From positions 93,072 through 157,071 of the forward strand of contig NW_003314423.1 of assembly GCF_000143415.4 (NCBI RefSeq): a stretch of 64,000 nucleotides of DNA, given 5' to 3'. Numbering within the stretch: the stretch's first letter is position 1; every line of letters begins with the position of its first letter. The notes under the pieces were generated by a model that was not told the DNA's origin, did not search any database, and saw only the letters and a program-made list of their open reading frames with translations. The position numbers and the translations under genes are program-made. The stretch is from Selaginella moellendorffii (lineage: Eukaryota; Plantae; Lycopodiophyta). Of this stretch, positions 17,996-59,400 are shown piece after piece.

Positions 17996-18490
17996 GTGTT
18001 TCCATGGTTCCAGAGTGAGGATCTAGAAAAACAACTATATCACGAGGCAATAAAGTCCCCAAAGCTACCAAATGAAGCAGCAAACCAACAAGCCGAGGGA
18101 GATGGAGAAGTGGCCAAAGAGGACTGCAGGAGCAGCCTCCGCGTTGCTCACAGAGCTCCGTGGCTGCAGGCTCTCGTCCTTGGCGCCAACAATGGCCTGG
18201 TCTCGATAGCATCGCTCCTCCTGGGCGTGAGTGCCAGGAACAGTAACGAGCGCAGCATCATCCTCTTGGGCATCGCAGGCCTCATCACCGGCACGTGCAG
18301 CATGGCAGTGGGAGAGTTCGTGTCGGTGTCCTCACAGTGCGACACCAAGGTGGCCGAGATAGAGAGGGAGCGGCAGCAGCACGCTCCCGGCAGGAGATGG
18401 AGGAGCTGGCCCAGATATACGTGACGTGCGGACTGACGCCTGAGAGAGGTGGCAGCACAGCTCTCCGGCAAAGGCCAGGACGTGGTTAAA
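17996..18490 (+). pseudogene. VIT1/CCC1 (vacuolar iron transporter-like) pseudogene
   Basis: RAPWLQALVLGANNGLVSIASLLLGV...AGLITGTCSMAVGEFVSVSSQ, then frameshift and truncation. Confidence 0.85.
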
Positions 18491-32700: not shown

Positions 32701-35273
32701 CTCGAACAACAATGCCACTTCCACTAACATAAGTGCTAGTGATGTAAATGCCTCAACTACACACCTTTTCCATCCAACAATCTACTCCAAGTGTTAACGG
32801 ATAAACCAACAAGCTATAGCAAGTGAATGCTATAACCCTTTCCAACACATTATGGGCAAACCCTCAAGGAAACAAGGTACCAACTCAAACTTAGCATAAT
32901 GGTCCACCATTGAGAATCTAGTCAAAGCTACTACAATGCTACTACGTGCAAGTAGATTAGCTTCTCCATCAACCACTTTGGGGTTGATCATCGTTAACCA
33001 AGCAACTTCGTAAACACATTGTTCATTATCACATGGATATGATATAAGTATCACAATGACTTGATCATCAATCAAGCAACAATATGAGCAATGCCAATGT
33101 CATTACTTCAAAGGTTTATGTGAGCATCAAGTGCCAACTCAATTCGACAAAATGCAACATAAATGCCACACTCCACCGATAGAGTTTTATAACACCCAAC
33201 ACCACTAACTTTTTGTTCACAACATGGACAAACTCATGCCACTCTCTTTCTGACCAAACTCAACACTAATCCAATACCAAGCTACTCAAGGAGCAATAGC
33301 AAGGTTCCCCGGAAAAGAATTGAGCATTGCAACCCAAGTCTTCCGATAGCAAGTCTAGACAAAATGGTTTAGCGTTTCACCGCTATCCATCCCATGACTC
33401 ACCATTTGTAAGACCATCATTTCCAACATGCATCAAGATAGGGACTCTTGATTGCATAATGTGAACACGAGCAATGAGTCACACCTCGTTGCAAATCATT
33501 TCTCCAAGAGAAGATGATTTACGTGTTTGATCCTTCGTCCCCGATGACTCTCTTTTCGTTCTCAATTTTGACTAAACCTCAAGCTTGCTTTCGCACTACC
33601 TTCAGTTCAATCCAAGAAAAGTTTATGAGAGAGCACGGCAATGATTACTTGAACCAATAGACTAATCCCTACAGTCTTTACTGATCCACTTGTAACCATG
33701 CCTAGGAAGGATCCACTAGTGCTATGCTAAACAGCTACAGACCAACCTATTTGCCACTCATAGCAAACTTAGGGAAGGTTTACTTTCACCCACGGTACAT
33801 GGAACAACTCATGGAACCACTGATAGGCTAACATTAATCCTGCCAACTCAAAGTGTAACCTCAAGTTGCTAATGCGCCTCACTCACGAGCCCAAGCTCAA
33901 ACTCGTGCTAACGGAGCATCTCAAATCCATCCTATGAGCCCAAGAGCAAGCTCACATTGTTAGGTACAAAAGGTAACCAAAACCATACCCAAGGAACAAA
34001 TGTGAACCCTTTGCACCAAACGTGTACCCACTCGGATCATCGTTTTCATCTCTGCGTATGCAACGAGACTAGTTGCCCAATCTCATTGTATAGTACTCGC
34101 TGAGACTCACCCTCTAATACCAAATGTAGCGCACGTGGTTTTGACCCTTTATCCTATGGTGATTTACCATAGGATAACACCACGAAGCGGAACCTAAACC
34201 CTCTTTGTGCCACGTGACGGATGCCACGTGTCACATGCCACGTGTCCATGCCACGTGTCCATAGGAACCCGAGGTTCAGGGCCTTGGGCCACTGAACGAT
34301 AGAACGGTGCCAAACTCCCAAGCATGGAGCCAAGGAGTGTCGGAACCGAACCATGGAGCAACTCCCGAGCATAAAGCCCAAGGAGTGAAGGGACAGGAGC
34401 CCGGAGCGACTTGGAATAGTCCTGGAGCAACCAGCATCCCAATGCCAGGACCAGCACGCAAAACGGAGCCAAATGGAGTCTGGCGCTATTTCGGCATACC
34501 GGTGGCCTAACGTGAGGATATGGGTACTCCACCAACTAGCATGGAATGGAACTTGGGCTTAGACCCAAGCCGGACGCAGAACAAGGATAGGCACGCAAGC
34601 GGGAGCTAGACTATGCCTCAGGTTGGTCAGCCATGCCCAACCTACCCACTATCCCTACTATACATTTAGAACCCCCCATAGCCCCCCCCCCCCTTGAGGA
34701 ACACACGCTTTGGGCTTTCACCCCAAGCCTCCCTTAGTATCAGGAGTTAGTCTCTGGGACAAGTTCGAAACTTACTAAATATGGAATGTCCCTAGATTGC
34801 GAATTTGGACACGGGACAAACACCATTGTGTTCAGGACGATCTCTACATTCCGTAGATATGCCAAATGAGCAAATCTGGACACTTTCCACAAATAGCATT
34901 TGGGACCGAAATGAGACTAACACAAAGGGCATGATAGCGAGGGTGTTTGGCAGACACGGTAAGCTATCATGTAGCGATATTGAGGGACCAATCTCAATAC
35001 GCGAGGGTTCTTGTCAAGCCAGTGCAAAACAGAGCAAAAGAGAACTAACAAGCCGGGCCAAGTATGCTCAGCTAAATAGACACTTAGGAATTCCTTCCTT
35101 ATGCTCATCCGGCCAAGTACAGATACAAAGTCCAGTTTACTAACACTTGAACAAGAGGGGCTAATAAAGGGAACCAGCAATACCGACCTCCTGCCATCGT
35201 GGCAGTAAGGTAAGAGTGTCCGTAAGGACTAGTTGACAGGTAACTTTCGATACCCGAAGTCACATGCGCGACA
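20721..35273 (-). mobile_element. Non-autonomous LTR retrotransposon (LARD-like), outer copy, ~7.27 kb excluding the nested insert
   Basis: LTRs at 20721-21875 and 34125-35273 (TG...CA). TSD ATGTA at 20716-20720 and 35274-35278. Minus-strand PBS tttggtattagagg next to 34125; PPT caaggggggagag next to 21875. No gag-pol ORF. Confidence 0.95.
22277..29556 (+). mobile_element. Non-autonomous LTR retrotransposon (LARD-like), inner young copy, 7280 bp
   Basis: 1144-bp LTRs at 22277-23420 and 28413-29556 look identical. PBS TGGTATCAGAG at 23423; PPT AAGGGGGGGAGAG at ~28400-28412. TSD CCCTT at 22272-22276 and 29557-29561. The 5-kb interior has no ORF over ~100 aa. Confidence 0.96.
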
Positions 35274-36381: not shown

Positions 36382-37950
36382 TTACAATTGGGATAAGCAA
36401 GCCGTTCCAAAGAGACGGTAGCTGGGAAGCTTAAACTTCCTTTCCTGGAAGACGTTCTGTGGCACAATCACTTCCTCCACAAGCCTGCATGGTCGCAAAG
36501 CAAAAGCAATTGAGAATACATGAAAGCTTCCAGGGACATACCTGGAACTTTGATATGAAGAATGGTGATGATTGTCATCTACAATAGTTGCCTTGAGTCG
36601 TTTGCTCGTGGCTGCAGCAGAAAAGGAAAAGAAATTAGTAGAGGTAAAAGAAAAAAAACCAAAATACTTGTGTCCAGCTCGGCCTCGTCACGGTCCTCAA
36701 TTGGCACTGTCGAGGTTGTCCCTTCGAGCACAGTGGCCCCCTTGGGAAGGCGAATGGTGAGAATCTCATCCTGCAGATTAGCTATTAAACCGTCGACGTT
36801 GGTGTAAGGAGGAACGGCAAGCTTCTCGGGGCAGTAAACGTCCATCTCCGTGGAAACAAGCACACCCCGTCCATGTTTTTCAACATGCACTTGATCCAGC
36901 GACGAGAGACCTGTACAGTAGTACGCAAGAGAAAAAAAAAAACATGAGATAACGTTGTCTGCAGTTGACTTACCCGGCACTTGCACATCGACAGTGTAGA
37001 ACTGCTGGTTCTCGAAGGACGACCACAATAGCTTGCGCTTGTCATATCCTGCATGCCACAGAGAAAAAGAAATAAAAAAACTCCAGGCAGGATCAAAGCC
37101 ATACCTTTATCAATGTGCTTGAGGCAGTTTAGCAGCAGCTGGTAAGCATGTTTCTTCTCAAAGTTGTAGAGAGCAACTAGACCGCCATGATCAGGGAACT
37201 GCGGGAGCCCCCCGGCATCAGCCACCTCCTGCGCTAACTTGAGGCTCCTGACACACATCGTCAAGGGAGCGTCGGGGAAGAATTCAGTGCATGGAACGAC
37301 CGGTGTAGCATGTGATATAGAGCGCTGATGGACCAGAGCGGTGAGGTTTGTGGACTGCAGACGAAAGAACCTGGTCCAGGATTCAGCGCCAAACACTCTC
37401 GCCTGCTCCTGCAACTCGTGCACTTCAAGACTCCGGCAAAAGTCGTGCACGAGGCGAGTTTCTTCCCGTCCACGCAAGTCGCGAATTGCATTCCCGATCG
37501 CGGCTCCCACCCCTGCAAAGCCGGGAAGGGAGAGACGGCCGCCACGATGGCCGGCGGGCAAACCGCCCCATCGACCGCAAACCACCCGGACACGACCGGC
37601 GGGCGCAAGTCGCCCTCAGCCCCCGGCCGCCCGGCCTCGGGCTCCACGTAAGCGAGCGGGGGGTTTGGGATTCTCCCAGACGCCGTCCACGAGCTTGATT
37701 ATGTGTGTATATGGGACGGGATGTCGTCAAACCCGAGTGGTTTTCCAGTGGATGGGGGGATTTCGCTCACAATTTCGGTGTACTTGAGCGTGTAGTCCAG
37801 GAGATGCGCCTCGAGGCCGCAGGTGGTAACATCAGAGTTGCCCAGCACCTTAAAGGCTTGGCCGAGGACACGGTTGTCTAAGCGGAGCATCACCACCCAT
37901 AGAAACTCTCTAAACTCTTTGTAGGCTTCTGGGTCGGTGGTTTGCTCACC
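36382..37950 (-). pseudogene. Spliced gene: unknown N-terminal region plus C-terminal alpha-crystallin/HSP20-like domain; 5' exon disrupted
   Basis: Exons ..37105, 37048-36974, 36910-36668, 36611-36542 and 36484-36382 join in frame. FYTVDVQVPG|LSSLDQVHVEKHGRGVLV...LAVPPYTNVDGLIANLQDEILTIRLPK fits the ACD pattern. Stop or frameshift near 37700. Confidence 0.6.
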
Positions 37951-38044
37951 TGAAAGAGCTATTAGCTGCGCTTGCTGTGAGGATGCCGCTCCTACTCCTA
38001 GTCGCGCCTATCAGCCGCATCAACATTTTGCGTTCCTTGCTGGG

Positions 38045-38693
38045 TTTTGGGTTTTAGTATAGGCGCGAGCGATGGCATCCAGCTCCAGCACGCAATTCGA
38101 CTTGCGCCTCGTTGCTATCCCGGGCTAAGAACGAGGTATGGGCATAATCTGGAGGATGAATGGTTCGTGGTTTACTTGCTCTACGAGACGTGTATGTCAT
38201 GGGTGGGCGATGATGGGGGGATTTTGCTCATAGAGCGATACCAAGATGGTTGAAACCAGAGAACAGCCGAAACGGAGTGTGTCCGCTGCCCACCTCTCCA
38301 CCTGGCGGTGGAGTCTTTTTACTCTCGCGAGGAGAGTGGGGCCTGCGGTTTCGAGATGATGTATTGGGAACGCTCCAATTTACAGGATGAGCAGGCGGTG
38401 GGAAAGACATTTCGAAAGGGCCTGGAGGCTGGAGGCAATCTCTTAAAGAACACCGCCCGCTTTTGGACGACCGAGAGACTGAAACGTTTTGGCGAAGATT
38501 GACGTGAAGTTAATCTTTTCCAGAGAAGCAATGCAGGCCCCTGTGGCTTTGGAACATAGAGCCGAGGATTTTATGAATGTGGGTATCCCGATGACTCGTG
38601 GTTATATAAAGGTGCCGTGCAAGAGGAAATAGACGCTCACAATTAGAAAAGTGGTGGTAAGACTCTGCCACCTGCGACTTCAATCCCATCAAA
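38045..38693 (+). pseudogene. Ecdysoneless remnant collapsed by many small deletions
   Basis: Colinear blocks RTRYGHNLEDEWFVVYLLYE, ACGFEMMYWERSN and DDSWLY match ~40630-42062 at under half the length. Confidence 0.88.
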
Positions 38694-39387
38694 GTGATCA
38701 CTCCAGGCTCGAGTGTCTGGGATTTGGGCTCTCACCTATCCTTCTCACGCAGCCTCCGTGCCCTGAACCCCTTCTTTGGATCCAAGCTAAATAACAAAAG
38801 TCTGCATTGCTTTCATCACAGCCTCTGGTTGATACATCCAGAGTTCCTCCTTGTCTTTAAAACTCGCCATTGATCTAGATATTAGTAACTTGGAGAGAAT
38901 GAGGAAGATAAATGGTTATGTTTCTATCCTCCTCCTTATGCTCGTTGGCTGTGCTTTGAATGTGAATGGAAGCAAGCGTATGATCTCTCCACATTTTTCT
39001 CTCATTTTTCATTTTCTGATTGAATTCGCAAATTCTCTTTTGCAGATAGATGGGATGAACTTCTGAGAGCAAATGCCAAACAAGCCAAGAGCACGATTCA
39101 GCGTGAGGTCGGAGCTGGTGTTGATGTTATAATTCTTCCAGATGATGGTGCTTACAGTGATGATTATATCTGGGATAGAGTGAGGATTTTCAAAGATAAA
39201 AACAATAAAGTGTCCCAAGTTCCAATGAGGGGATAGAAAAATAACTATGGCCAAAGATAAATTTAATCTTAATATTTACAAAAGTGGCCCAGTTTATTTA
39301 AAATAAACCTCATAGAAATTTATTCATTTATAATCTGATTCACAATTTCATGTATAAAGGCACAATTCTCCCATTAGTTTCCTAAAA

Positions 39388-40566
39388 ATGTCTCTATGGT
39401 TTATTGTTCTTGTATCATTCTCTCTAATTTCAAGCCCATTACTCGTGGCTGGGATCCAGACGCTGAAAGTCTCGTCCGTCTACAATTTTGGTGACTCTTA
39501 CTCCAACACTGGCAACCTGGACGCTGGATTTCCCGTACTTCAACATCTTCAATCTCCCCAATTCCCATATCCCATCGCAGCACTGCCCCTAGGGCAAGGA
39601 TTTCTATCGCAACAATCAACACTCAAGGTTTTGCAATGGCCAGCTTATGATCGACTACCTCACCGATTACCTTGGCTTCCCTCTCCTGTCCCCATACTTG
39701 CGGAGCATCACCATGGGCTCCAACTTCCACCGCGGCGCAAACGTTGCCTATGGAGGATCCACCGCCGCCTCGGTCTACGAGAACCACAACCCCTTCGATC
39801 TCGACGTCCAGGTCTTCGAGTTCTTGCGCCTCCAGCACCTGGCCAACACCACCTCCGGATCCACCAAGCTCCCATCGCCAGCTTCCTTTTCGGACGCCCT
39901 CTTCGTGATCCAAGCCGGCTCCGCGGACTTCGCCTACAATCTCTTCGCCCAGAATGTAAGCGTCCAAAACATGACCGCGATGGTTGTGCCCATGGTCGCC
40001 GAGACCATCTACAACGAGACCATGATCCTCGCGCAGCTCGGCGGCGCCAAGAAGTTCCTCATCTTCAACCAGCCGGCGGTGGGCTGCCAGCCCTTCTTCC
40101 TCACGCAATCCAAGCTCTACGGCCAGACCCAGAGGGACGGGCTCAACTGCGTCAAGAGCTACAACGACATCGCCCAGGCATTCTCCTCGCAGCTCAACAA
40201 GACGGTGAGCGCTCTCTGCGGGGGGACGCCGGCTCCATGGTTGTCTACGCCGACCTCTTCCAGGCCAGCATCGATGCGATGAACAGCTTCCAGGCCGAGA
40301 ATGCGCTGCGGGCGTGCTGTGGATCGCCGCACGGCGATGGCGAGTCTAATTGCCAGACCGGGACGATCAATGGCGTCGCTACCATGTTTACGTGTGGATG
40401 CGGCAAAGGGAGGGCTTACACGAACAGCACCGAGTTTGCGAGCTGGGATGGAATTCACTACACAGAGGAATTTAACAAGGTGGTAATGGAGAAATTTACC
40501 AAGGAGAACATGTACTTTGACACCAGCGGTAGAATTTTTTGCCGCGTAACTTTTTTTACCAATTAA
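39388..40566 (+). pseudogene. GDSL esterase/lipase, intronless, with two compensating frameshifts
   Basis: Signal peptide, FGDSYSNTGN and C-terminal ACCG...WDGIHYTE are in one frame. The GDSL core (MIDYL..LGFPLLSPY, GANVAYGG, GAKKFLIFN..VGCQP) is in the 39647 frame. Confidence 0.85.
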
Positions 40567-40647
40567 CAAATAAAACTTTTCACATTTTTTTCTTTTTGTG
40601 GAATCACCCTTCTCACTAAGCAGCTAGGGTTTAGGTAGGGTTTGGCG

Positions 40648-42701
40648 ATGGATGCTGGTGCCGAGGACGCGGTGTTCTATTCGATCTATCCGGGATTACC
40701 AGCCGGCGCGAGCGATGGCGATACCTTGATCCAGCTCCAGCGCCTCCGCGACGATTGCCTAGCTGTAGCGTCGCCGCTTGTCCGTGGATACATCTGGCAG
40801 CACGCGCAGTTCGATTTGCAGGTAGCGCTTTCGGCGCCGCCATCGCACAGGGAGCCGGCATTTTCCGGTGACGAGGAGCCGGCGGCTCGTTGCGATCCCG
40901 GGCTGCCGCTTGTCTATGGAAGAACGAGGTATGGGCATAATCTGGAGGATGAGTGGTTCGTGGTTTACTTGCTCTACGAGATTTCTCGGAGGATTCCGGG
41001 GGTGTATATCAGGGTGTGGGACTCTGATGGAGAGTTTTTGCTCATAGAGGCAGCGTACGCGATACCAAGATGGTTGAAACCAGAGAACAGCCAGAACAGG
41101 GTGTTCATCAGCCAGGGGTCACTTCACATTCTTCCACTGCCCACCTCTCCGGCTCACGTTGGCCTTTCTCTAGCAAATCCAACGCTGGCAGAGGCCGTGA
41201 GAGTTCTTTCCAGCGGAAGCGTCGACACTAGAGCTTCCGAGGGTGTCCAGGCAGCAATCGGCCGAAAGTTGGAAGGATATCCCGAGCGGTCCCGGAAGAA
41301 CATGCACAGAGTGAGATGCAAGGTTCCTTTGAGCGTAGCGCAGGTGCTCAAGCACGAGCCACAGCTGGTTGCTCTGGCGGTGGAGGCGTTTTACACTCGC
41401 GATCACGATGCAATGGCTGCGGCCTCGAGGATGGAGAAGTTTTTACGTGGAGGGCAGGATGAGATAGTCACCGTGGCGGTTTGCTTGTCCAAGGCTATGT
41501 ACGCTCAGCTCAAGCAGCAGGTTTTCCAGGCTCCTCGGATTTATCCTGCGGAGGGACAAGATGACATTGGCGTGAAGCTGGCCTGCGGTTTTGAGATGAT
41601 GTACTGGGAACGCTCCAATTTCCAGGATGAGCAGGCAGTAGGCAAAACATTTCGAAAGGGCCTGGAGGCTAGAGGTTACTTTAAAGATCTTCTTGAAGGA
41701 TCGAAAGAACACCGCCAGCTTTTGGACGCTGCCTTTGCCAGCTACCGAGAGACGGAAACGTTTTCAAGAATAAGGTAAAGGTTGACGGGAAGTTAATCTT
41801 TTTTAAATTTTCTTCGTTTTTCCAGAGAAGCAATGCAAGTCCCTGCGAAACGAATTGACGAAATTTTGGCTTTGGAACATAAAGCCGAGGATTTCATGAA
41901 TGTGGATATCCCGGAAAGTGACGATGACTCGTGGTTATATAGAGGTGAAGATGAGCTAACAAGTGCCATGCAAGAGAGACAGAAGGAAATGGACGCTCAC
42001 GATAAGAAAAGTGGTGCTAAAACTCTGGCACCTGTTGTCGAAGGCGAGTTTGATCCCAGCGAATTGACCAAGACAATGAAGTCATTTGTGGACAAAATCT
42101 CAAGTTTTGAGGGTGCTGAGGTACCAAAGAGTAAGATATATTTGTGATCTTGTTTTGGGCTTTTGCTAACCATCAACTCTGACAGATGACGAGCCTGTGT
42201 CTATGGATTTGGAAAATTTTATGCAAGAGCTCAAAACAGCACTGAAACTGGATAATGAGCGTGCCGGGAACTTGCAGTCGGGCTCCTCAGATTCAGATTC
42301 GGGTGAAGGTATTCGTTTTCTCTCCTCTCAATATGCAAGCTCTAAATTGTTTTCCGTTTGAAAGCTCAGACGACGAAGATGGAGACCTTTCGAAAGGTGA
42401 CGATGACTTTATGGAGGAGTACTCCGACGCTATCCAACACGAGCTTAAAAACTCGAGTGTCTCCAAAACATTTGCTCAACCTGACGTGTCTCGCGCTTCT
42501 GGGTCAGCATCTACTTCTGCTACCGCTACCGGAGATGACAACTTGCCCGTGGACGTAGACCTCAACCTGCTCAAGAACCTGCTCGACTCGTACTCATCGC
42601 AGCAAGGCCTGCCCGGACCAGCGTCTAACGTCCTGGGAATGATGGGAATGCAGCTCCCAGACGACAAGGAGGAGCATAAACGTAAGACTCGGAGGAAGTG
42701 A
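40648..42701 (+). CDS. ECD: Protein ecdysoneless homolog (SGT1/ECD family); 4 exons, apparently intact
   Basis: Exons 40648-41774, 41826-42130, 42186-42308 and 42370-42701 join in frame. Motifs [88 protein letters not shown]. Telo-box-like TAGGGTTT x2 just upstream. Confidence 0.92.
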
Positions 42702-42994
42702 CGTGACGGAGTGCGTTGATTTGGACGAGACAGAGACGGAGACAAAGCTTCCCTCGTCGAAACCAAACAGTGGGACTGTGTTACAACTTAAGACCCACGC
42801 ATTCGGAGGAGAATGCTGCTGGACCAAGAATTATTTATCTCAGTTACCAGGTATTCACATTTATTTCTTTTCTTGCCTCACATTTCTTCTCCCAGATAAT
42901 ACTCCACTTGGATAGTGCATAAGACATGTTTAATCATCGTTTCATGTTTTAAATTTGCGGTTTCAGGAAATGTCGGGTATTTGAGAAGCTGGAT

Positions 42995-43480
42995 CATGTG
43001 ATTCCACGGTTCCAAGCAGCAGAGCAACAAACCGGGGGACATGGAGAAGCGGCCAAAGAGTGCCGGAGCAGCCTCCCCGTCGCTCAGCTGCCGGCTCTCG
43101 ACGACGGCCTAGCCTCAATAGCATCACTCCTCCTGGGCGTGAGTGCCAGGAACAGTAACGAGCGTCCTCTCGGGCATCGCGGGCCTCATCGCCGGCGCGT
43201 GCAGCATGGCGGTGGGAGAGTTCCTGTCGGTGTCCTCGCAGCGCGACCACGAGCCGAGATAGAGAGGAGGGGGCGGCAGCACACCGCCGGGGGTGCGGGA
43301 GAATTGACATGGAGGCGCTGGCGCGACCGTGGCAGTGTCGGCGACGGTGTTTACCACTGGCGGTGGCGTGCCCCTGCTAGCCGCGGGGTTCGTGGAGGCG
43401 TACCGCCATGGCGAGGCTGATGGTGTTGAGGCCCAGATAGTCGTGGACGAAGCTAAACACCGCGTTGGCGGCTGCATTTA
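42995..43480 (+). pseudogene. VIT1/CCC1-like pseudogene, copy B
   Basis: DDGLASIASLLLGVSA and, in a shifted frame, GIAGLIAGACSMAVGEFLSVSSQRD. Deletions relative to copy A. Confidence 0.8.
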
Positions 43481-43499
43481 CAGTTGATTGTTAAAGTTA

Positions 43500-44480
43500 A
43501 AGCCGACTCTTTCTTAGAAGAAAATTAATAAATGACGAAATCTTTTTTAAAAAAAGTATATTAAATAATTATGCCTGGATATTATAGGAATATTTTTGTA
43601 CAAATAATAGAATCCTAGAATATAAATATAAAATTTAAATATTCCATATTTAAACTCTAACTTTCTCCAGAAGACCTAGATTTTAGAAAAATCTGAAATA
43701 CTCTTGAAACAATCAAGAAATTAAAAGTAAATATATTCTCATTCACATTTTGCTTCCGAAGCAGTGCAAGTATTTTGGGATTGAGGGTTGAGAGATGTTA
43801 TGGGTTTTGTAAGTGAAATATGATAAAATACCAGCCTTCAGCATATTCATGCCTATACGACATATAATATTCAACGGTAGGAAATAAATGCTTTTACTTG
43901 GAGAGTTCAACCATTATAAAAAGAAAAAAGTGCTTAAATCCCCCATGTGAAATATGTCACACAAAAATTTAGACATACCAGCTTAATTCGAGAAACACTT
44001 TCATTCCAGTGCTATGTTTGAAACACTTTACTTTGTTATGCATTTGTGCTCTTTAGTTGAAATCTGAAATGTTGGAGAAACAGTTTGAGCACACACTTGC
44101 TTAAGTTTGAAACAGCTAAAATTCATGCGCTCACATAGATGCAATGTTTCACTAAGAATCACTTGATTATATCATTGGATGGTTTGGAAAAACATTAACT
44201 GATTAAAAATTGAAACTATAAGAAGAATATTCATTATAAGACAATTGTTTTCCAAATAATAATTATAGCTTTAAATCCTGCTGTGCCAAACAATATTAAT
44301 GAAAAAAAAATTAATATTCATGTGTGAAAGATATCTCCAAAGATAAATATGACACTCAATCAATATGTTATTATCTTATAGTTTTATTGTGCTAAATTAA
44401 ACGAATCAACCCAAAGAAATAGAATAATTTTTATTGTCCAGTACTTAGAATTTTTTAGGTACTAAACCTATAAAAACAAA
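43500..44480. repeat. AT-rich dispersed repeat (other copies ~18565-18960, 52740-53450, 53450-54320)
   Basis: Shared blocks tcaagaaattaaaagtaaa, gattgagggtt and aaatatgata(g/a)aatacc in all copies; ccagtgctatgtttgaaacacttta also at 53194. Confidence 0.85.
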
Positions 44481-44571
44481 ATATTTCTGATAATAGTACC
44501 GTGAAGGGAGCATCTAGCGGATTCTATGTATGGAGGGGTATGCAGGGCTGCTCGACTGACATGTCAGAGAA

Positions 44572-44880
44572 GTGCAACCTGACACATCTCGTGCTTTTGG
44601 GTTAGCATCTACTTTTGGTACCATGAAAACTTGCATGTGGACGTGGACCTCAACCTGCTTAAGAACCTGCTCGACTTATACTCATTTCAGCAAGAGACCA
44701 GCACCTAATGTCCTGGGAATGATTGGAATGCAGCTCCCATATGACAAGGAGGAGCATAAACGTAAGACTCAGAGGAAGTGATGTGAAGAACTTTAACAAG
44801 AGAGACATGCAGACAAAGCTTCCCTCACAGAAAACAATGAGTGTGGGACTGTGGACTGTGCAGAGTCTGTTAAAAGTTGA
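44572..44880 (+). pseudogene. Further Ecdysoneless 3' fragment plus 3' UTR
   Basis: [16 protein letters not shown]...PNVLGMIGMQLPYDKEEHKRKTQRK* matches the last ECD exon. Confidence 0.85.
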
Positions 44881-45659
44881 ATACTTGTTGACCTTTCTAG
44901 AGTTTAAATCATACTCCCTTATTTAAACGTGCTATTGGCATATGGCATCCGGCGTCTTTTATTCCATTTTTAGAATATTATTTCTGAATATGCTTATAAT
45001 CTAATGGCTTAAATTCAAAAACTTCAAATAGATGGCATGGATGAAGTGCTAAAGGGGTGGCAACGCTTCAATTAATGACGCTCCAAATCAAGTGAAATTT
45101 TTTAGGGCGATCGGGCAAATTCATACAGGACAAGCTGCCTTTGGTGGGCGTGTGCATACCCTTTGCGAAAGCCAGGATCGTGGATTGCTCATCGCTATTT
45201 GCGACACACGCACCTTGCCTGGGACAGGTCAAAGGTGGACAGTCTGAAGAACACAAGCTCCAGCTCCATGACGACTTCCCCACTGGCAACCACTCCTGTT
45301 CGCCACATTTTCTGTGCCATACAGTCTTGTTGAAGGAAGGATATTTATACTCACTCAGTGGTCATGTCATTGTTTGAAATGACTTTGGAAGATCAAGAGA
45401 CTGCGATGGTCTTTCATAGATTATTGCAAACCAAAAGTGCAATAAAACCTTTGTCGTTGTTTTGTCTCAAAACATTTTTGCTGTGTGCAGGCCGGATCCT
45501 CGCCCCTGTATTTCCCATCCGGCCAGATTCCAAAGTCTCTGCAAGCCACAAACGTTCTCCAGGAGCTGGCTGTGAGGTGGAAGAAGCGACGCATCCACAA
45601 ACTCCATGGTTTCATGTGACTCCATGAACATGTCAAGGATGTGTCCAAGCTTGCTAAGT

Positions 45660-46410
45660 TGCTGCATGCACTATTGGTGAACAACCGATCAAGGTAGATT
45701 GAAAATTCTTTACTTTTTTCTGAAGACAATTTGCAGGGACTGCTGAATCCTGCAGCTATGGCTAGGCTGGCGCTTGGAGAAGCTTCGACGAATCTTGTTT
45801 GGGCTAAGGTACTCTCATCTTAATTGTGTTTACACACCTTATGATCTGTTTAACTTTGCAGGTTGAACTTGATTCCGAAATATATGTACAATCCTGCTGT
45901 TGCTCTTCGTGACACTGTGATCGAGCTTGAGGTTGCAATAGAAGGTGGAAAGGACAGCTTGTCAATGGCTGCTCAAGCAGGTGGTGAAACTGTCAAGGCA
46001 CTTGCGAATCTCGTCATTAGTCGTATGTGACTTGTCCAGACATTACACTCATCGTCACCCCTGATTTGAAGGTACTGAAATTCATATCCTTTCATTCAAA
46101 TCTGATTACTTGCTTCTTCCAGATTGGAGAGGAAGTTGTTCTTTTGTTGGGACTGGCAAAGGTCATCTAGGAGGTTTTGCACTGGCCCAATTTTTTGATC
46201 AGGTCAGACAAACTGTGGTTTTCTTTCCTTGCTAGCTTCCACTATGCGGATTAGTGATACTTGCCTGGACGTTGAAATATTTAAAACGTGCCTTCAATGC
46301 GACACAGGTGATCATGTCATTCATCGGTTTTCTTTTTTAAACAATCTGGATTTTTCTGCGGACAGGACCTTATTGGCAAGAAACTTATTTCTGCAGGACA
46401 TGATATCAGA
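45660..46410 (+). pseudogene. Captured fragment of FGAM synthase (PurL/PUR4)
   Basis: CTIGEQPIK|GLLNPAAMARLALGEASTNLVWAK and IELEVAIEGGKDSLSMAA...YVTCPDITLIVTPDLK; introns retained. Confidence 0.85.
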
Positions 46411-46737
46411 GTTATAGTTTCATTGCTATAGTTTCATTGTCTATGCGAGAAATTATGGCATTGAAGTAGACATTCGGACACTCTAAGCATATCCATGGGA
46501 GGAGCTATTGCTACAGAAGTCGGGGATGAGACCACTGAACCATTAGAATCAGAAACAGATCAAGCATCAACTTAAATGCAGTCAAAGACGTGTTCACAAC
46601 CTTGAGCTTCAGGTAACCTCTATCCCTGCTTCATTGTAAGAGAGCGCCAGTGCTGAGAATTTCTTCTGTAACTTTTCCACCCTATACACCAGGGATGCAT
46701 GAAGAACTGGGCATTCCAAGTTTTTTACACTATGCAG

Positions 46738-47180
46738 AAAGGAATCATACTATTCAACCAGAAGCCTTGCATGAGTATTGATTTCCTTGTAAAAGCCAAG
46801 AAGTGGAGAAAATTCCTGAAGAGGTTGCCAGGTTCCTCCTGAGTGCCACAGGTCTCAACAGAGGCAGGATCCGAGTTGGCAACGTAAAATCTGGCTGGAA
46901 AATTATGGTTATGGTAAATTATAGTAATTTTGGACAAGGTATCAATGCTTTATCGATTACAGATTTTTATTACTGCTGCAACAGATAGAGATAGCGGCAT
47001 TATGCATCTTGCATTTGAACTGGTGGAGAAAGTTGCCAGAAATAACTTTCAACACATTACTGAAACCAAGAACACAATATTCACAGACTGTGAATGGCAT
47101 TCTTGCATTCATAAGAAAACAAGTTTAGTGACGATATCAGCCTCAACACTCTCGCTTTTCTGCGTTTTTGCGCATTGGTG
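46738..47180 (+). pseudogene. Captured fragments of a BIG-type Sec7 ARF-GEF
   Basis: KGIILFNQKP..IDFLVKAKK..PEEVARFL..ATGLN (Sec7 start) fused to RVGNVKSGWK|IFITAA...LAFELVEKV...ITET..IFTDC...ISLNTLAFLRFCA (downstream HDS region). Confidence 0.8.
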
Positions 47181-48039
47181 AAGGAAAGCTCAGTACTTTC
47201 AGATAGTAACAAACATCAAGTTGTTCTGTGCGACTTCATTGGAATCATCAAAAGACAGCAATCAGTGATTTTGAGAAGTAAGTTTTCTATTACTCTCGTT
47301 ACCACAGGCTGACGATTCATTCAGATGAGATTGTCAGTAAATTGTCATAACAACCAACGAGTTTATATGCCCAAGCAGACGTGTTTGCTTATGGCAAGGT
47401 CATTAAGGAATCTCTCGCAGTCTAAATGTTTCTTTCTTCATATCCCCGAGGAACCTTGAGCAGAAGGTGTTCTGGATTATTAGATTCTTCATAGAGTAAG
47501 TTCCTGAAGGTTCATTCCTTGCAGCTCTACAGTTACCTTGTTCTTGCAGACTTTCACAGGCAACCGTCCATCCCTAAGTGTGCTGTATTATAGATCCAGA
47601 TTACAAATGATCAAATCCAGATTTTGATTTGATATCTGATGTTACCAAATTATCATCTATGTGCTGTTATCTTCAGAGATGTAGGCAATAACAGCATCAA
47701 TGCAGGGAAGAATGCTGTATCCGCCATATGTGTATAAGTTTTGGAAAGCATTGCCATAGTTGCTCAAGAAAGAGAAAGAGATTGAAAAACACTAGAGGAA
47801 AAACTCATGCATATGTACCATCATTCCCGCCCAGCAAGTGTCTGGTAAATCTGAGAGAAAAGCTTTCACACTCCCACCGGGACCAAGTATGGAAGTAAAA
47901 AAACCAATTTTTTTTTATGATCTAGAGCTACATGCTAACGATGAAATTCACGCCTTGCTGTGTCAAACAAATGACCCAACCTGCGTAGTATCAAACTTGA
48001 AGGAAATGAGTACTACTTACATGAACAACCCCTGAAAAT

Positions 48040-48455
48040 CAGTGTTGGCAAGGATGCATTCATGTCCCAGGCAATCTATGAGAAGATCCTCTGGTGTTTC
48101 AATCCCACAAACAGCAACAACAACCAAACAACCAACTTGAGTTCCTTCAACTCAATCATGAAGTAGACTGTCTCTCAGTTTCTCCGAGTGACCAAGTCAG
48201 CTTGCAGGGAGACTTGTGATGCTACAAATATTAAACTTGGTGAATCAATCCTTTTAAGAGTGCCTTGGCTGGGAATTGAGTAAGCATGTGCATGGCCTTG
48301 CCACCAGTTTTCACCATCTATGCTCAGGTTACTACAAGCAAAAGCTTTATTAGCTTCTTCTCAGAGATGAAAGAAAAACTCGAGCTACCTTCTGCAGTTC
48401 CATAAGCTAAGGAGTCCTTTCTGGTACATCCAGAAGCACATTGAAGTTCCTATGG
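48040..48455 (-). pseudogene. Captured fragment of a class-3 lipase (diacylglycerol-lipase-like)
   Basis: IDGENWWQGHAHA and YFMIELKELK..VVAVCGIETPEDLLIDCLGHECIL resemble the plant GDNWWRGHAAAF and VRGTETPEDLITDGL motifs (recalled, not searched). Confidence 0.65.
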
Positions 48456-48512
48456 GTAAAAAATTGATAGCATAGACTGATTTTGTTTTTGAGTTGTATT
48501 TGTTATTATCAC

Positions 48513-48765
48513 NNNNNNNNNNNNNNNNNNNNNNNNNNNNNNNNNNNNNNNNNNNNNNNNNNNNNNNNNNNNNNNNNNNNNNNNNNNNNNNNNNNNNNNN
48601 NNNNNNNNNNNNNNNNNNNNNNNNNNNNNNNNNNNNNNNNNNNNNNNNNNNNNNNNNNNNNNNNNNNNNNNNNNNNNNNNNNNNNNNNNNNNNNNNNNNN
48701 NNNNNNNNNNNNNNNNNNNNNNNNNNNNNNNNNNNNNNNNNNNNNNNNNNNNNNNNNNNNNNNNN
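48513..48765. other. Assembly gap
   Basis: N run. Confidence 1.
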
Positions 48766-49001
48766 TAACGTAGCTACTGAATAGTTATATTACTATTGCA
48801 GTAAAATTAATGGCATGCATTGGAAATTGGGATTAAAGCAGTAACAAAAAATATGGATTTTGTCACACATGATGACATTTTGACACTTCTATGACAATAC
48901 AAGTTTACTTCTTCTTTTAAACAAAGAAACTCCGTTATATCACTCACCACTATAGTGTTCAGAAAATGCTAATAATATCACAATACAATTATATAAATAG
49001 A

Positions 49002-49034
<33 letters not shown>

Positions 49035-50166
49035 GAAACAAAACATTCTTGAGGATATCTTAGAATATCATTATTTTTAATATCTTTATAAATAATAATA
49101 ATGTTATAAATCATTTTTAGTATTCAATATTAGCATTTTCCACAAAATCCATGTTATATGTTCTTTCTATATTTCATTCTATAGTATTATAATCTATTTA
49201 TTTTATATTAATCTTATATTTTAGGTCAAGTTCAAAAAGAATTTTACATGATTTTCTTAAACATTCTAAGTCCACTTACAATATCAATATATTCCCACCT
49301 TTATAAAATATATGCATAAAAATAAAATTCACAAAAGAAATCAAATGATACTTCCAGAGGTGTTGGATTTGGGACTTTTGGACAAGGGAAATGGTGATTT
49401 ACCAAGACTTGATATATGGGAATATCCCTATACCCATGATCTTCAAGACAGTGCTCCACACAAAGGAAGCCTTTAGTTCAAACTATGGATTTTGATAAAG
49501 TATGGTACCTACAAAAATGGCCCCAAAATTCCAAAATTCCAAGCAAGGACCTCAAGAAATTGACCACACAATACAAGAGAAGTTCCTGAATGTTGGAGAC
49601 TATCCTGGAATAGAAAAAAAAAACTTCTTTAGACAATCACTGTTCTGTGAGGTGACCAAAAAGCCGAAAAGAAGTGCATTGAGGATGATCTTTGATCAAC
49701 AGGTTCTGTGAAGAACCAGCAGCAGCTGTGGTTGTGACACCTCCGTAACCTCAGCATCTGCCACCACCGCTGCAGTACCAGCAAGTAGCCTTTCGACCAT
49801 ACTGTCCGTATGATCCATTCGTCTCATAAACATAAGCTTTTATCACCTTTTAGGGCGCGCGTTTGTTCTGACTGTGTGATCTCACAGGTTGAAGATGATT
49901 ATGTGCACGAGATTCTAGCGGCAAAAGCTGTATGAGATCCCCATCTATGCAGGAGAACAAGGTAAAAACAAAGAAAAACTCGATCAGTTTTTGTTCCTCA
50001 TTCGTTTGCTTTTCTTCCATGCAGGCGCCCCAAAGTTCTCACAATCGATCTTCAACACTAGATCCCATGGTGAAAACTCTTAATTTGTTTCCAACCAAAG
50101 ACTTTTAATTCTTCTCCAAATTTACAACACTACGTTACAATAAACTTGAGCTTACTTCACATGCGC

Positions 50167-50900
50167 TTAGAAGAAGTCTATGAGTGGAGCTATGAGCAAT
50201 AAAATGTATAGTGCCGCTGTGAACCACATTGTGCCAATCTGGACCCATTTTGAAGGCTAGCCAATGTCGATAGCATCCTTGTCTCCGGTCCAGTGAGCAA
50301 CATAGCCGAGTACATGCTCGCAAGAGATAAAAGAATGAGTAGATGTACGTGACAGGATGGTGCTGGGACGGCTTCTTTGCTTCGTGGAAGTCGTGCTCAG
50401 ATCCAGTGCTGCTTAGTTTGTTGCTGTTTTTGAAATCTCTCCTTGAGAGCAAAGGTTGCAAAGGAGCTTCTGGAAGAAGAATTGAGTAGAAAAACTCACA
50501 AAGTCGCTCTAATGTTACCTTCCTTGCGAGGAGGAGCTGGCAGAGACAGAAAAGTGGTCAAAGAGTCCGCAGAATATATCACGGAGATAAGCGTGGTGGC
50601 CACTCCAATTCAATTGTAGTCTCACGGCTCACTTGACAATGCATTGTAGCAGTAGAGCAGGTAGCATTCAGCTGGAACAAATACAAAAAATCATTCATAC
50701 TCAACAGAGAAAACGTCGTTACCTGAGGATGCACGAAGATAGCAGAAAAAGAGATGCTAAGAGATAGCGAGCTCGTGATAAAGAAGAGATTGAGCTTGCA
50801 ATCTTGATAAGCAGGATTGAACCACTTACACAGATATCCCAAGACAAAAAAAGTCGCGATGTAGCACACTAAGGACACAGCAAGCAAGGCATTATACATG
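50167..50900 (-). pseudogene. Captured fragment of a Serinc (TMS/TDE membrane protein) gene
   Basis: ALLAVSLVCYIATF...WFNPAYQDCKLNLFFI, PVTYIYSFFY, LASMYSAMLLTG, WVQIGTMWFTAALY..LIAPLI; frameshifted, introns retained. Confidence 0.8.
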
Positions 50901-51854
50901 TGAAGTGTGCATCTTGTTCTATGTATAAAACTTCAGTACAAGTTCAAGTTCATTCAAATTGTACAACTTGAAGAATCTTCTGGAGCTCTAGCTGCTTGAT
51001 TCACACAGGATGGGCTCAATAGAAACCAGAACGTTTTTTATTCCATGAGACCAGGAGCACTGCAGCTTGGAATAGTTCCTGGTTCCCAATGTAGCCACTA
51101 AGAATAAGGATAAGGGAACACCATTTGTGAGATTTGTCAGCAGGTAATGTCATCCACACTAAATTTTTTGATTTTTTTATCAATACAGAATTTATTCGAT
51201 CAACTTACAAAATTTCCTTGTCATGCTCGCTCGATGTTGTTGATATTGCATGGAGTTATGCATCCAAGTCGACTGTGAGAATTCCTCATCCCTTGCTGAC
51301 CATGGCAAACTTTCTCAAGTCAGAGTTCTCCTTCTCCTACCCAGCTGTAAGTTCCATGGCACAAGGCTCCTGGCTGCCATGAAATCAAAGATGTGCTTAG
51401 GTTGTGTTCTTTGCTCTCCACACACGGACATTGAGAGACTCAGCACTGGTTGGGCGAGTCCCATTTCTATAAGAATGGAACAAGCTCAAAACCTGTTTTT
51501 TCATGTTCAGTAGATTCTATTTTTGCCCTGCTGGGATTATATTGATGGAGGCTTTATGGAGTGATCCTTGTGATGGTGGTGGGCAGGAGAAAGACGAGGC
51601 TGGGAATCCTGAAATCCCATGCTCTTGTTGCAGCAGGTTGAAGGTAGGGACTGTTCTAAGCAATTCTGGCTCTTCCTCATTTATTTTTCTCTCTTTTGTG
51701 TTTGGTAGTATGCTCATCAAAAGTGTGTGCAGCACTGGTGCAACTAAAAAGAGGACACCATCTGCAAGATTTGTCTGCAGGTACATCATTTACAACTTAC
51801 AATTTGCTTACCTTCCTTATGTTTGCTGATTTCAATCATTCTTTAGTTTTAAAT

Positions 51855-52645
51855 GCAGCCAAGGTAGAGCTCCATTCCTGAGAGTTATGACACAACACTT
51901 AAGAACTTAACTGCAAATGTGGATTTCCGCACAAGGGTCACCAACCTGTCGCTGCTTCCATCGCTGCATGATGTTTGTGGTCATGAGAAAAAAACAAAAG
52001 CTGCAGAAGGCACAGCTTAGAATCAAAGCTGTAAGTCTCAGTAGCAACTGGTAGTAGTAACAAGGTAAGAAACTTTGTTGTTTAGGCCGGCTGAGATTTC
52101 TAAGCAAGTTTCTGGCTTACCATGCTTGTGTTCTATGATTCTTATGATCATTTTTTCATTTTTTTTTCTTTTTCTTGGTGTTTGGTGCCTCACCTCTGTT
52201 TTGCAGCTTTTTAAATGCTACACAGCACCAATCCAGTTTCATGCCACTCCTATTGCTCTCTCCCTAATGACCACTCGAGGTATGTGTACTTTTTCTTTTC
52301 CTTGACATGCTTACTCAGATTCTTCATTGTTTAGTTTATAATTTTTTTTTTATAGTGCTGCTTTTTCATTAAGCAATTTCTGTGAAGCTGAGGTAGAGCT
52401 CCATTCCTAAGAATTGTGCTTAAGAACTTTCATAGAAGGGTCACTAAACTGTCACTACCACCATCACTGCATGATATCTGTGATTTTGTGGCTCAAACTT
52501 GTCATGAGAAAAACCAGTTAGTGCAGTAAAGAAATGACTAAAAAAGGCATGAAGGAATTGCAAACCTGGTAAAGCTGTATAATACATAGATTGGAATCAA
52601 AGCTGTAAGCCTTGGTAGCAACCAATAAAAATAAACATGCTAAGA
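51855..52645. repeat. Diverged ~230-bp direct duplication near the Helitron 3' end
   Basis: aggtagagctccattcct...cttaagaactt...aagggtcac...gtcatgagaaaaa...aatcaaagctgtaag at ~51860 and ~52390. Confidence 0.75.
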
Positions 52646-54379
52646 AAAAGAAATAGTTTAAACAATTATAGTTACAAATACATCTTTTCAAATTGAAAAT
52701 ATTCTCTACTACTCCCAGCGGAGCTGGGATCCCTACTAGTGTGGAATTATTGGTAAAACAATATTCCTATAATATCCAGGAATAATTATTTCATCATAAT
52801 TTTAAGTAAGATATATTTATCCATTAACTTTCTTCTAAACTTCAGATTTTAGAAAAAAAGCTGAAGTACTTTTGAAACATCAAGAAATTAAAAGTAAAAT
52901 TAAATTTTTATTCACATTTTGCTTCTGAACCAGTGTGTGTGTTTTGTGATTGAGGGTTCAGAGATGCTGTGGCTTTTATAAGCAAAATATGATAGAATAC
53001 CAGCCTTAGCCAGATGCCATATTGATGCCTATATGACACATAATATTCACTGTCTCAGAGGGTTAATGAAAGAAATGCTTTTGCTCGAGGCACAGGCCGA
53101 TGTGTCCCACTGAAATGAGAAGTTGTTCAACCATTGACAAAAAAAATGCTTAATCTAGACATACCATCTTAAGTTGAAACACTTTTATATTCTCCAGTGC
53201 TATGTTTGAAACACTTTACATTGTTATGCATTTGCGATATTTTATTGAAATCTTGAATGCTGGAGGAACAATTTGAGCACACACCTGTGCATGCAATGAT
53301 ATAATCAAGCATATTCTAGGATGGTACATTTCTTGGTGGATAATGCATATGAAACATTCATCAATCAAACACAACCTTTCTACACTCACAGCTGTGAGCA
53401 TCTATTTGAGCAGCAACTTTTAATATTGGATGGTTTGTGAAAAGCTAAACTGTGGAGTGTGCACAGTCTGTAACAAGTTGACAGAGTTTAAATGTGGAAT
53501 ATTTAAATTTTATGTTCTAAGATTCTATTATTGGTAAAAAAAATATTCCTATAATATCCAGGCATAACTATTTAATCATAATTGTTATTTATCCATTAAC
53601 TTTCTTCTAAACTTCAGATTATAGAAAAAAACCTGAAGTACTCTTGAAAAAATCAAGAAATTAAAAGTAAAATATATTCTCATTCATATATTGCTTCCGA
53701 AGTAGTGCATGTGTTTTGTGATTGAGGGTTCAGTGATGCTGTGGCTTTTATAAGCAAAATATGATAAAATACCAGCCTTCAGCCAGATGCCATATTGATG
53801 CCTATATGACACATAATATTCACTGTTCAAGGGGTTAATGAAAGAAATGCTTTTGCTCGAGGCACAGACCGATGGGTCCCACTGAAATGATAAGTTGTTC
53901 AACCATTGATAAGAAAATGCTTAAATCTCCCATAGGTCACGAAAACTCACCACCAAGAAATGTTTTAACCTTACCATCCTAGAATATGCCTGATTATGGT
54001 TTGTGAAAAGCTAAACTACAAAATTGATTAAAAAATTGTAACTATATAAAGAATATTCTAAGAATATTCTAAGCTGTTTCGTTTTCCAAATAATAATTAG
54101 TTAATGTGTTTTGAATCCTGTTGTGCCTCATAGGATGAAAACATATTAATGAAAAAAAAACATTAATATTCATATATGAAAGATAACTTCAAAGTAAACA
54201 TGACACTCAATCAAAGTGTGATTATCTTATATTTTTATTGTGTTAAATTAAGTATTTTCTCAACCCAAAGAAATAGAATAATTTTACTCTTAGAATTTTA
54301 GGAACTAAACCTTTATAAAAATAAATCTCAAGATGGCTAAACAGGTATTTTCTTTCTTTGGGAAGTTTGCTCCTAGTGC

Positions 54380-55480
54380 CAATGGTAAGCCAGCCGTTCC
54401 GGAGAGACGGTCAACTTAAACTTCCTTTGCTGGAAGACGTTCTGTGGCACAATCACTTCCTCTTGCGACAAGCCTCTTGCGGCAAGCCTGCACGGTCACA
54501 AAGCAAAAGCTATTGAGAAAACATGAAAGTTTCCAGGGACATACCTGGAACTTCGACACGAAGAATGTGGTGATGCTTGTCATCCTGCCTTGAGATGTTT
54601 GCTCGTGGCTGCAGCAGAAAAGGAAAAGAAATTAATAGAGGTAAAAGAAAAAAAACAAAATTCTCGTGTCCAGCTCGGCCTCGTCACGGTCCTCAATTGG
54701 CACTGTCGAGGTTGTCCCTTCGAGCGCAGCGGCCCCCTTGGGAAGGCGAATGGTGAGAATCTCATCCTGCAGATTAGCTATTAAACCGTCGACGTTGGTG
54801 TAGGGAGGAACGGCAAGCTTCTCAGGGCGGTAAACGTCCATCTCCGTGGAAACAAGCACACCCCGTCCATGTTTTTCAACATGCACTTGATCCAGAGACG
54901 AGAGACCTGTACAATAGTACGCAAGAGAAAAAAAACATGAGACAACGTCGTCTGCAGTTGACTTACCCGGCACTTGCACATCGACAGTGTAGAACTGCTG
55001 GTTCTCGAAGGACGACCACAATAGCTTGCGCTCGTCATATCCTGCACGCCACAGAGAAAAAGAATAAAAAACTCCAGGCAGGATCAAAGCCATACCTTTA
55101 TCAACGTGCTTGAGGCAGTTTAGCAGCAGCTGATAAGCATGTTTCTTCTCAAAGTTGTAGAGAGCAACTAGACCGTCGTGATCAGGGAACTGCGGCAGCC
55201 CCCCCGGCATCAGCCACCTCCTGCACCAACTCGAGGCTCCTGGCACACATCGTCAAGGAAGCGTTGGAGAAGAAATCAGTGCATGGAACGACCGCGGATG
55301 TCTAGGCGGAGCATCACCATCCACAGAAACTCTCCAAACTCGTTGTAGGCTTCTTGGGTGGGTGGTTTGCTCACCTGAGAGACATTCCTGCCTTCGCTGC
55401 TGCTCGTACTCCTACTCACGATTGCTGTGTGGATGCCACTCCTACTCCTAGTCGCTGTTGTTGTGTGAATCAGCCACCTG
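54380..55480 (-). pseudogene. Second copy of the HSP20-domain fusion gene, with an internal deletion
   Basis: Near-identical to 36390-37300. About 570 bp (equivalent to ~37303-37875) is missing at the junction near 55295. Confidence 0.8.
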
Positions 55481-57189: not shown

Positions 57190-59400
57190 GATGGATACCA
57201 TACATGACATGGTGGCGCTCTAAGTAAAACTTCTTTAGTGGATTGACTTAAGATTCCAATTTTTTTTCCAGTGATGATGGTGTGGATGAGTCTCTAGCTT
57301 GGCTAGGTAATATGAAGAAGTTTTTGCCTGCTAGGGGAACTCCAAATGTAAAGGCTTTAGTGGCTATTCTAGTGGTTTTACATGATGTGAGTCTTTACTA
57401 ATGGAATTAGCTTAAGAAGTCTCGTGTTGTGGATAAGAAACCATTAGTGTCTACCATGGATGAGTTTGAGGCTACTTTTTATTTATGTTTGCCCCTCATT
57501 ATGATATGGAGAATGCTCATAGGGAATATCGAGATTTCTAGCAAAGGAAAATGACACTTAGGGATTATATTGAGAAGTTTACTCACTTCATTAGTCATAT
57601 TCCAAAAAAGGATCCAAATCAGAATAAATTCTACTTCATTAATGACTTTTATAGTAAGAGCATATGGTAGCATTTACATCATTCTTAGCCTACAAAGAGT
57701 TTGGAGGAGTTTTTTGATGTGGCTTATCGGCATGACAATGACAAGCATAAGTCTTATAAGCATTCGAGGAGTCCTTTTATTGAGAATCATTGTGATTATT
57801 GATAACTTTTAATAAAGAACTTTTGCTTACTCTTTACATTCGAAGTAGTCACCACATACTTCAGTTTATGATGTTTGTTCACATCCTTGTGTCCATGTTG
57901 GAGCCAAGGACAAGCCCCATTTACTGACATCAATTTCAGCTAAGCTATATAGAGGAATAATAAATTCAATGAAAACTAAAGAAGTTACTTGACTTTCATA
58001 GTGCACCTTATTTCTATCCTTTTAATGTCCTCATTGACCCCTATTGAGCCAAGGGGAACTAGCACCTCCATTTGTGCACTCAATTTACCAATCCTTCCAT
58101 TGTGTAGACCAGCTATTCCATGTGAGATTCCATGTGAGACAACTAATCATCCACCCGTACCGCAGTCTTACTGTAGAGACCTTTGTCCGTGCCTTTCATT
58201 GTGTAGACCAGCTATTCCATGTGAGATTCCATGTGAGTCATCCACCCATACTGCAGTCCTACTGTAGAGACCTTCGTCCGTGCCTTTAATTGTGTAGACC
58301 AGCTATTCCATGTGAGATTCCATGTGAGACAACTAGTTATCTACCCGTACCGCAGTCCTATTGTAGAGACCTTCGTCCGTGCCTTCCATTGTGTAGACCA
58401 GCTATTCCATGTGAGATTCCATGTGAGACAACTAGTCATTCAGCCGTACCGCAGTCCTATTATAGATACATTCGTCTGTGGATACTCCACACAAGAGGAT
58501 GTAGACCAGCTATTCCATATGATGCAACTAGTCATCCACCCGTACTGTAGTCCTATGGTGGATACCTTTGTCGGTGGATACTCCACACAAGAGGAAGGGC
58601 ATACGCATGGATGTCCAATACGTACAATTTCAAATTTAGGGGTAGGAATATACTTTGCTTAAGGGTATATTATATTTTTAAGTAGCCACTAATCAATGAG
58701 AATTGAACCTGTGTCATTTGCTTCAATACCACATGTAGCACATCTTATCTCTCTCCCTTTAAGACAACTAAAAAAATGGTAATTGTTTGATGAGAGAGCC
58801 TTTAGTGGCTATTTTATCCCCATTTATCCCCTAAAGTTCCAAGGATCCACAGTGACAGTATATCTAAATCTCATCCTATAATCAAATGTGCTACACTTTG
58901 GATTTGGTGCACTAGTCTTGCTTGTGAAAAAGAAGGATGGTTTAATGTAGATGTATATTGATTACCGTGTCTTGAAGAAAAAGATGGTGAAAGATAAGAT
59001 ATAGATGCTACATTTAAATAATATCTTAAACAAGCTTGGTGAAGCATAAGTGTTTACTAAGATTGGCATAAGGAGTGTATATCATCAAATTGCAATAGAC
59101 GAAGTGTATATTTCCAAAACAACATTCAATATGTTATGCTGTTTGGTCTGACAAATGCATCAGTCACATTTACTTGGTTGATGATAAAGGTGTTTAGGCA
59201 TTTTTTTCATGAGTTTGTGGAAATTTTTTTTAGTAAGAATATGGAGGAGCATAAGGTTTCTTTATTACTATATAACAACAACTTTTATATGAAGAAGAAT
59301 AAATATAGATTTTCAAAGTCAGAGGTGGAGTATCTAAGTGTAAACAACCAAAGAGAAAGACTTGAGGTGTAGTCCATTGGGTTCAAATATAAAGCCATGA
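57190..59400 (+). mobile_element. Decayed Ty3/Gypsy gag-pol relic
   Basis: Gag-like LKIPIF..DDGVDESLAWL. RT motifs LVLLVKKKDG..MYIDYRVL, FTKI.IRSVYHQI and MLFGLTNASVTF..LM.KVF. Many stops. Confidence 0.8.
58090..58600 (+). repeat. ~99-bp tandem repeat, ~5 units
   Basis: Units begin tgtgtagaccagctattccatgtgagattccatgtgag at 58101, 58200, 58291 and 58390, with a degenerate unit at ~58499. Confidence 0.92.

Follow-up and report, generated by a model that had tools for sequence, protein, structure and literature searches.

Background

Canonical Helitrons begin with TC and end with CTRR, carry a palindrome some 11 nt short of the end and insert at A/T without target duplication (PMC4778049; PMC12477314). 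Their RepHel protein nicks the DNA, peels off a strand and stops at a hairpin; read-through of this stop and template switching are routes by which cargo can enter the element (PMC4778049). Carriage of gene fragments is an ordinary, known behaviour of Helitrons and is best known from maize, where about 2,791 elements hold pieces of 376 genes (PMC13317346). Here we describe an element of about 7.8 kb at positions 44909-52739 of a 64,000-nucleotide stretch of the Selaginella moellendorffii genome (contig NW_003314423.1; the whole stretch is called the window below). It is very probably a non-autonomous Helitron bearing host-gene fragments.

Like the gene-fragment Helitrons of maize, the Selaginella element has a 5' TC, a 3' CTRR with a small hairpin and fragments of several genes (PMC12477314). 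It differs from them in its lycophyte host and in the host introns of 45-80 nt, which are so short that 7.8 kb has room for about eight donors. Three of its eight pieces are antisense to the element, whereas antisense pieces survive less well in maize (PMC12477314). Maize Helitrons insert near other Helitrons (PMC12477314), and relatives of the Selaginella element also appear to insert into the 5' ends of others. Helibat1/Helraiser, a bat element that has been mobilised experimentally, is similar in its TC and CTAG ends, its AT target and the absence of a target-site duplication (TSD), and its palindrome lies 11 nt from the end, against about 10 nt in Selaginella (PMC4778049). Unlike Helraiser, the Selaginella element has no RepHel gene and is known from recent copies, not from observed activity.

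Pack-MULEs and Pack-CACTAs also carry intron-retaining host fragments between element ends, but differ by their terminal inverted repeats and target duplications, neither of which is present in the Selaginella element. Helentrons (Helitron2) use a TT target and have subterminal inverted repeats. The element does not belong to this class: its target is A/T, its ends are TC and CTAG, and there is no inverted match between the ends. Gene capture by Helitrons of Selaginella was not the subject of any paper returned by a literature search; this carries little weight since the primary genome and Helitron papers lay outside the search.

Ends of the element and its target site

The boundaries and the target comprise the following features (a slash marks a junction in the motifs given in the text).

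44900-44908, plus strand: left target flank, last base A (junction reading, flank alignment)
44909-45121, plus strand: Helitron 5' terminus, beginning TCATACTCCC; about 213 nt common to family members with other cargo
52713-52729, plus strand: 3' hairpin TCCCAGC-GGA-GCTGGGA, 7-bp stem and 3-nt loop (folding)
52736-52739, plus strand: 3' terminal CTAG, then target T; the alignment with sibling locus L004 stops here and the flank differs
52740-52747, plus strand: right target flank, first base T (junction reading, flank alignment)
53484-53500, plus strand: empty paralogous target site, exact 17-nt match to the joined 9+8 flanks

The left junction reads AAA/TCATAC at 44909 and the right one CTACTAG/TGTGG at 52739, so that the 5' terminus is TC and the 3' terminus CTAG, an end shared with L004. 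The 3' edge of the GC-rich hairpin lies 10 nt before the last base, with 6 nt followed by CTAG. Its fold (z -1.9) is modest evidence taken alone; the same hairpin family is present at seven other CTAG ends in the loci that were fetched. Comparison of the element with itself by BLAST gave internal direct repeats only and no terminal inverted repeats. The duplicate of an ecdysoneless 3' end at 44481-44908 was excluded from the element, because the homology among family members begins at 44909.

The element is non-autonomous. An autonomous Helitron encodes RepHel, an HUH Rep joined to a Pif1-type helicase; here the longest stop-free stretch is 140 codons, neither Rep nor helicase motifs are present, and the sequence that fills the assembly gap in sibling copies is also non-coding.

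The joined flanks recur intact at 53484, and the junction neither gains nor loses a base when aligned to empty sites. Among 879 A/TC starts upstream of 52739, only 44909 rejoins into a site found elsewhere. More empty copies are located at about 43650 (minus strand), at 18568 (with a 4-nt insertion) and at L003 12860, which is a single copy of the target repeat on the other haplotype. Paralogous and allelic empty sites alike therefore show that the element went in between A and T and duplicated no target bases. The copy at 53484 is a paralogous tandem copy, 7% diverged from the filled one, and from 6 nt to the right of its junction the filled copy lacks 28 bp, a separate deletion.

The window is 100% identical to scaffold GL377727.1 (assembly GCA_000143415.2) over the 11.9 kb compared, and has 96.8% identity to GL377583.1, the other haplotype, over the compared stretch. 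In 10 kb of the allelic region of GL377583.1 the target repeat is present and the cargo entirely absent. Since the region is built of diverged tandem duplicates, we call the empty sites paralogous and not strictly orthologous.

Such tandem or segmental duplicates, with pieces of GDSL lipase, ecdysoneless 3' end, VIT-like and HSP20-like genes, lie at 14898-18857, 36394-44480, 44575-44853 and 52746-55455. The haplotypes differ in the number of duplicate units, and 43514-43659 lies in opposite orientation on the two.

All this agrees with a sequence-only reading of the window, which had proposed a Helitron with an A/TC 5' end, a hairpin 6 nt before CTAG/T, no TSD, no visible RepHel and joined flanks preserved at 53484; the identity of the element was upheld by the canonical ends, the empty sites and the dispersed copies sharing termini. 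The same reading had guessed correctly that the genome was that of a lycophyte.

Sibling copies and age

A search with the BIG piece of the cargo led to S. moellendorffii gene models that include even its frameshifted tail, and the loci of these models are sibling elements. The closest is L004 (GL377581.1), which ends at the same CTAG with a different flank. It matches 45525-48512 of the window at 98% and 48766-52739 at 95%, and 220 bases free of Ns lie between the two parts. On its 5' side, element nucleotides 4-19 are followed by a 597-N gap equal in length to the missing part. L004 was rejected as the allele of the window, which is GL377583.1. L004 and the window copy differ by 1.2-1.8% substitutions and the haplotypes, at ecdysoneless, by 1.0%; this proximity points to a recent copy event.

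L005 and L006 are partial copies at 90-92% that keep the order FGAM-BIG-PGI, and copies with this order are altogether 90-98% alike. With these three siblings, at least four loci carry the cargo; contig depth was not used as a measure of copy number. Moreover, copies of the first 213 nt, 83-89% alike, lie in L007 (at 2301 and 9555) and L008 (at 9489), each with a different upstream flank and cargo. Termini are thus shared by dispersed copies with different flanks (the 3' end in L004, the 5' end twice in L007 and in L008), as the sequence-only reading would have it, while L005 and L006 provide partial bodies.

Cargo: host-gene fragments

About eight host genes, unrelated to each other, have contributed broken pieces to the cargo. 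The searches took each exon singly, not a joined spliced model.

45122-45627, no strand: cargo without Pfam match, partly exon-like; in the related L007 element, not present between 5' terminus and FGAM fragment
45628-46200, plus strand: FGAM synthase (PurL) fragment, frameshifted (Pfam PF22689, E 8e-5 and 2e-4; PDB 9n9w, E 2e-5)
46490-47190, plus strand: BIG ARF-GEF fragment (tblastn of full-length plant BIG; sibling gene model with PF09324)
47214-47585, plus strand: cytosolic glucose-6-phosphate isomerase (PGI) fragment, intron 47278-47324 (PDB 7e77; RNA reads)
47990-48360, minus strand: probable class-3 lipase fragment (ETPEDL motif)
48513-48765, no strand: assembly gap, AT-rich non-coding DNA in siblings (fill 220 bp in L004, 247 bp in L006)
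48766-49600, no strand: AT-rich spacer that includes an (AT)n run; stretches of it about 80% alike in other Helitrons (L004 unit 1, L006, L007)
49700-50090, plus strand: fragment of an expressed host gene without Pfam match (diverged plus-strand RNA reads)
50170-50930, minus strand: fragment of Serinc, from its middle to its C-terminus (Pfam PF03348, E 5e-8 and 2e-4; weak PDB matches to Serinc3)
51112-51785, plus strand: two presumed RING-CH (RINGv)-like pieces, 51112-51146 and 51566-51785 (intron 51644-51708), by cysteine pattern
51854-52647, minus strand: fragment of an expressed gene, present twice, 51854-52072 and 52383-52647 (internal repeats 75-81%)

GT-AG introns of 43-80 nt are retained, which indicates capture at the DNA level, as had been proposed, and the cargo has many stops and frameshifts. 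In the FGAM synthase piece the small introns lie at about 45694-45736, 45809-45861 and 46072-46122. In the BIG piece (introns 46613-46692 and 46914-46962) the start of Sec7 (amino acids 606-660 of a 1779-residue plant BIG) is fused to the HDS region (amino acids 1208-1290), with about 550 codons lost. The PGI fragment is a new assignment that was overlooked in the sequence-only reading: PDB 7e77 is matched with E 0.03 by the window piece and E 6e-4 by the sibling piece, and RNA reads extend in frame past both its ends.

From the original list of FGAM synthase, BIG, class-3 lipase and Serinc, the first two and the last were borne out by PF22689 with 9n9w, by tblastn and by PF03348, respectively. 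The lipase label, which we take from an ETPEDL motif, found no usable match in Pfam, Atlas, the homolog search, the metagenome scan or PDB; a gasdermin match (E 0.12) was discarded as chance. Diverged host RNA reads lie on the minus strand over this piece. The RING-CH label, absent from that list, is presumed from a cysteine pattern, and these pieces had no library match; the region has an internal 83% repeat and plus-strand host RNA reads. Minus-strand RNA reads with a coding-like loose end cover 51854-52647, for which Atlas gave no match. Three further pieces have no assignment, two of which are matched by host RNA.

Assembly of the cargo

By analogy with other Helitrons, a RepHel transposase encoded elsewhere would nick at the 5' TC and peel one strand off, transfer would stop at the hairpin and CTAG, and the copy would be pasted into an AT site. 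The cargo would have been built at the DNA level in several steps before the family spread, through terminator read-through or repair-type template switching, and partly out of other Helitrons. The window copy would be a recent landing in one unit of the local tandem duplication, and its cargo is most likely inert pseudogene material.

Other Helitrons contain the FGAM, BIG-HDS and spacer modules as well, in different contexts, and exchange between elements, not fresh capture, may lie behind part of the mosaic. Mixed orientation of the fragments had earlier suggested several rounds of capture; such rounds remain an interpretation, and cargo exchange may account for part of what they were meant to explain.

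Alternative explanations

A Helitron can also be functional, producing chimeric transcripts or small interfering RNAs that act on the donor genes, as known for maize and Brassica Helitrons (PMC13317346). This precedent speaks for such a role at our locus, as does the existence of predicted genes, SELMODRAFT_412042 among them, that string the pieces together. We consulted one RNA library (run X21, 12% read, probably from another individual) over 46900-52899, where it has 702 reads: none matches at 99% identity or more and 52 match at 95-99%. The reads are 85-99% alike, their strand is that expected for each donor, and 97% of them continue into unlike sequence, which is consistent with intact expressed donors elsewhere; they look like transcripts of these donors. 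The spacers have no read cover in this library, no cross-fragment joint is present among the joints listed, and there is no sign of element transcripts. The chimeric transcripts that the sequence-only reading had envisaged are therefore unsupported so far, and with the many stops and frameshifts a functional element seems unlikely.

Far less probable is that two separate or nested Helitron pieces were joined across the assembly gap by the scaffolder. No contig from the sequencing runs used, and no single record, bridges 48513-48765 in the window copy, whose continuity is known via siblings only, and members of the family are often stacked. Against such a join, L004 is free of Ns from window position 45525 to the 3' CTAG and L006 also spans the gap; the filling sequence, AT-rich and devoid of termini, matches the contig ends entering the gap from either side, and the outer flanks rejoin to the base. 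Judged from the siblings, the gap would be no break in the element, and the two sides can be taken as contiguous, as had been assumed. The reading frame across the gap is not at issue because the fill is non-coding.

Least probable of all, and already largely refuted, is a decayed segmental duplication or remnant of a syntenic gene cluster with Helitron-like ends by chance: the neighbourhood is indeed made of diverged tandem duplicates and the hairpin alone is modest, but the homology of siblings breaks off precisely at TC and CTAG, beyond which the flanks are unrelated, one start in 879 rejoins, and at least six unrelated genes are represented in 7.8 kb, none of them in the allelic region, the cargo being present instead at unlinked loci.

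Besides the unbridged gap, several points weigh against the reading of the element as a gene-capturing Helitron. No internal relic hairpin-CTRR ends were found between the fragments, which leaves stepwise read-through a conjecture. A RepHel partner with matching termini did not come to light, though no search aimed at one was made. The allelic region also differs by diverged tandem duplicates and is not a clean orthologous empty site.

Helitron trains and (TCA)n stacks

Of the eight CTAG ends of the family seen in the loci that were fetched, six directly adjoin the 5' end of another Helitron: in three cases exactly TCA is missing, in one there is an extra TCA, and two are flush. This sample is limited in size and favours annotated cargo. 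In an independent contig the 3' end of the window element is followed by TCA and then by its own 5' end, and (TCA)4-6 stacks head the trains in L004 (where six TCA are found), L005 and L008.

These arrangements fit repeated insertion at A/TC and TCA/T of earlier elements. We tentatively propose, at somewhat less than an even chance, that the family aims its insertions at the outermost bases of other Helitrons' 5' ends (A/TC, TCA/T), which would give nested head-to-tail trains of dissimilar elements, (TCA)n leftovers of successive insertions and, driven by stacking, cargo exchange between neighbours. The copy in the window has a single TCA and an empty site; under self-targeting it would be a founder that stands alone.

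Train junctions were located in L004 (2606-2640, 9256-9272, 17152-17170), L005 (5213-5224), L007 (2297, 9554) and L008 (9488, 17932 and, on the minus strand, about 3222). In one L008 stack, a 5' end is interrupted after about 13 nt by a further insertion. At L005 5213-5224 a related Helitron stack has inserted in reverse orientation at an A/T site within the FGAM fragment of the sibling copy, and L007 17948-18116 has a similar arrangement.

Gene models and neighbouring features

SELMODRAFT_412042, 428634, 431744, 432182 and 431742, which stem from loci L004, L005, L006, L007 and L008, are false fusions of Helitron cargo. An annotated model of 315 amino acids at 44623-48035 (L009 13976-17388) starts in the duplicated ecdysoneless 3' piece and crosses the 5' junction into the cargo, and is probably a false fusion as well. 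About 30 S. moellendorffii models share a piece of a kelch gene that is Helitron cargo in L004, L007 and L008; the kelch family may therefore be inflated.

Elsewhere in the window, a large long-terminal-repeat-type element poor in open reading frames lies at 20720-35273, nested inverted in a relative and absent from the other haplotype (L003 4934-4939). Genes of the RWP-RK and SNF2-type helicase kinds, one of each, lie amid a cluster of at least six small RING-H2 (ATL-like) genes at 16-13765, and a tandem array of 91-99 bp units lies at 58093-58595.

Conclusions

The element is a clean textbook example of a gene-fragment Helitron outside flowering plants and opens no new mechanism by itself. 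Its full boundaries, empty site, near-identical sibling and older copies make it a good subject for the mapping of capture junctions. If the wider family proves to be self-targeting genome-wide, that could open a new mechanism.

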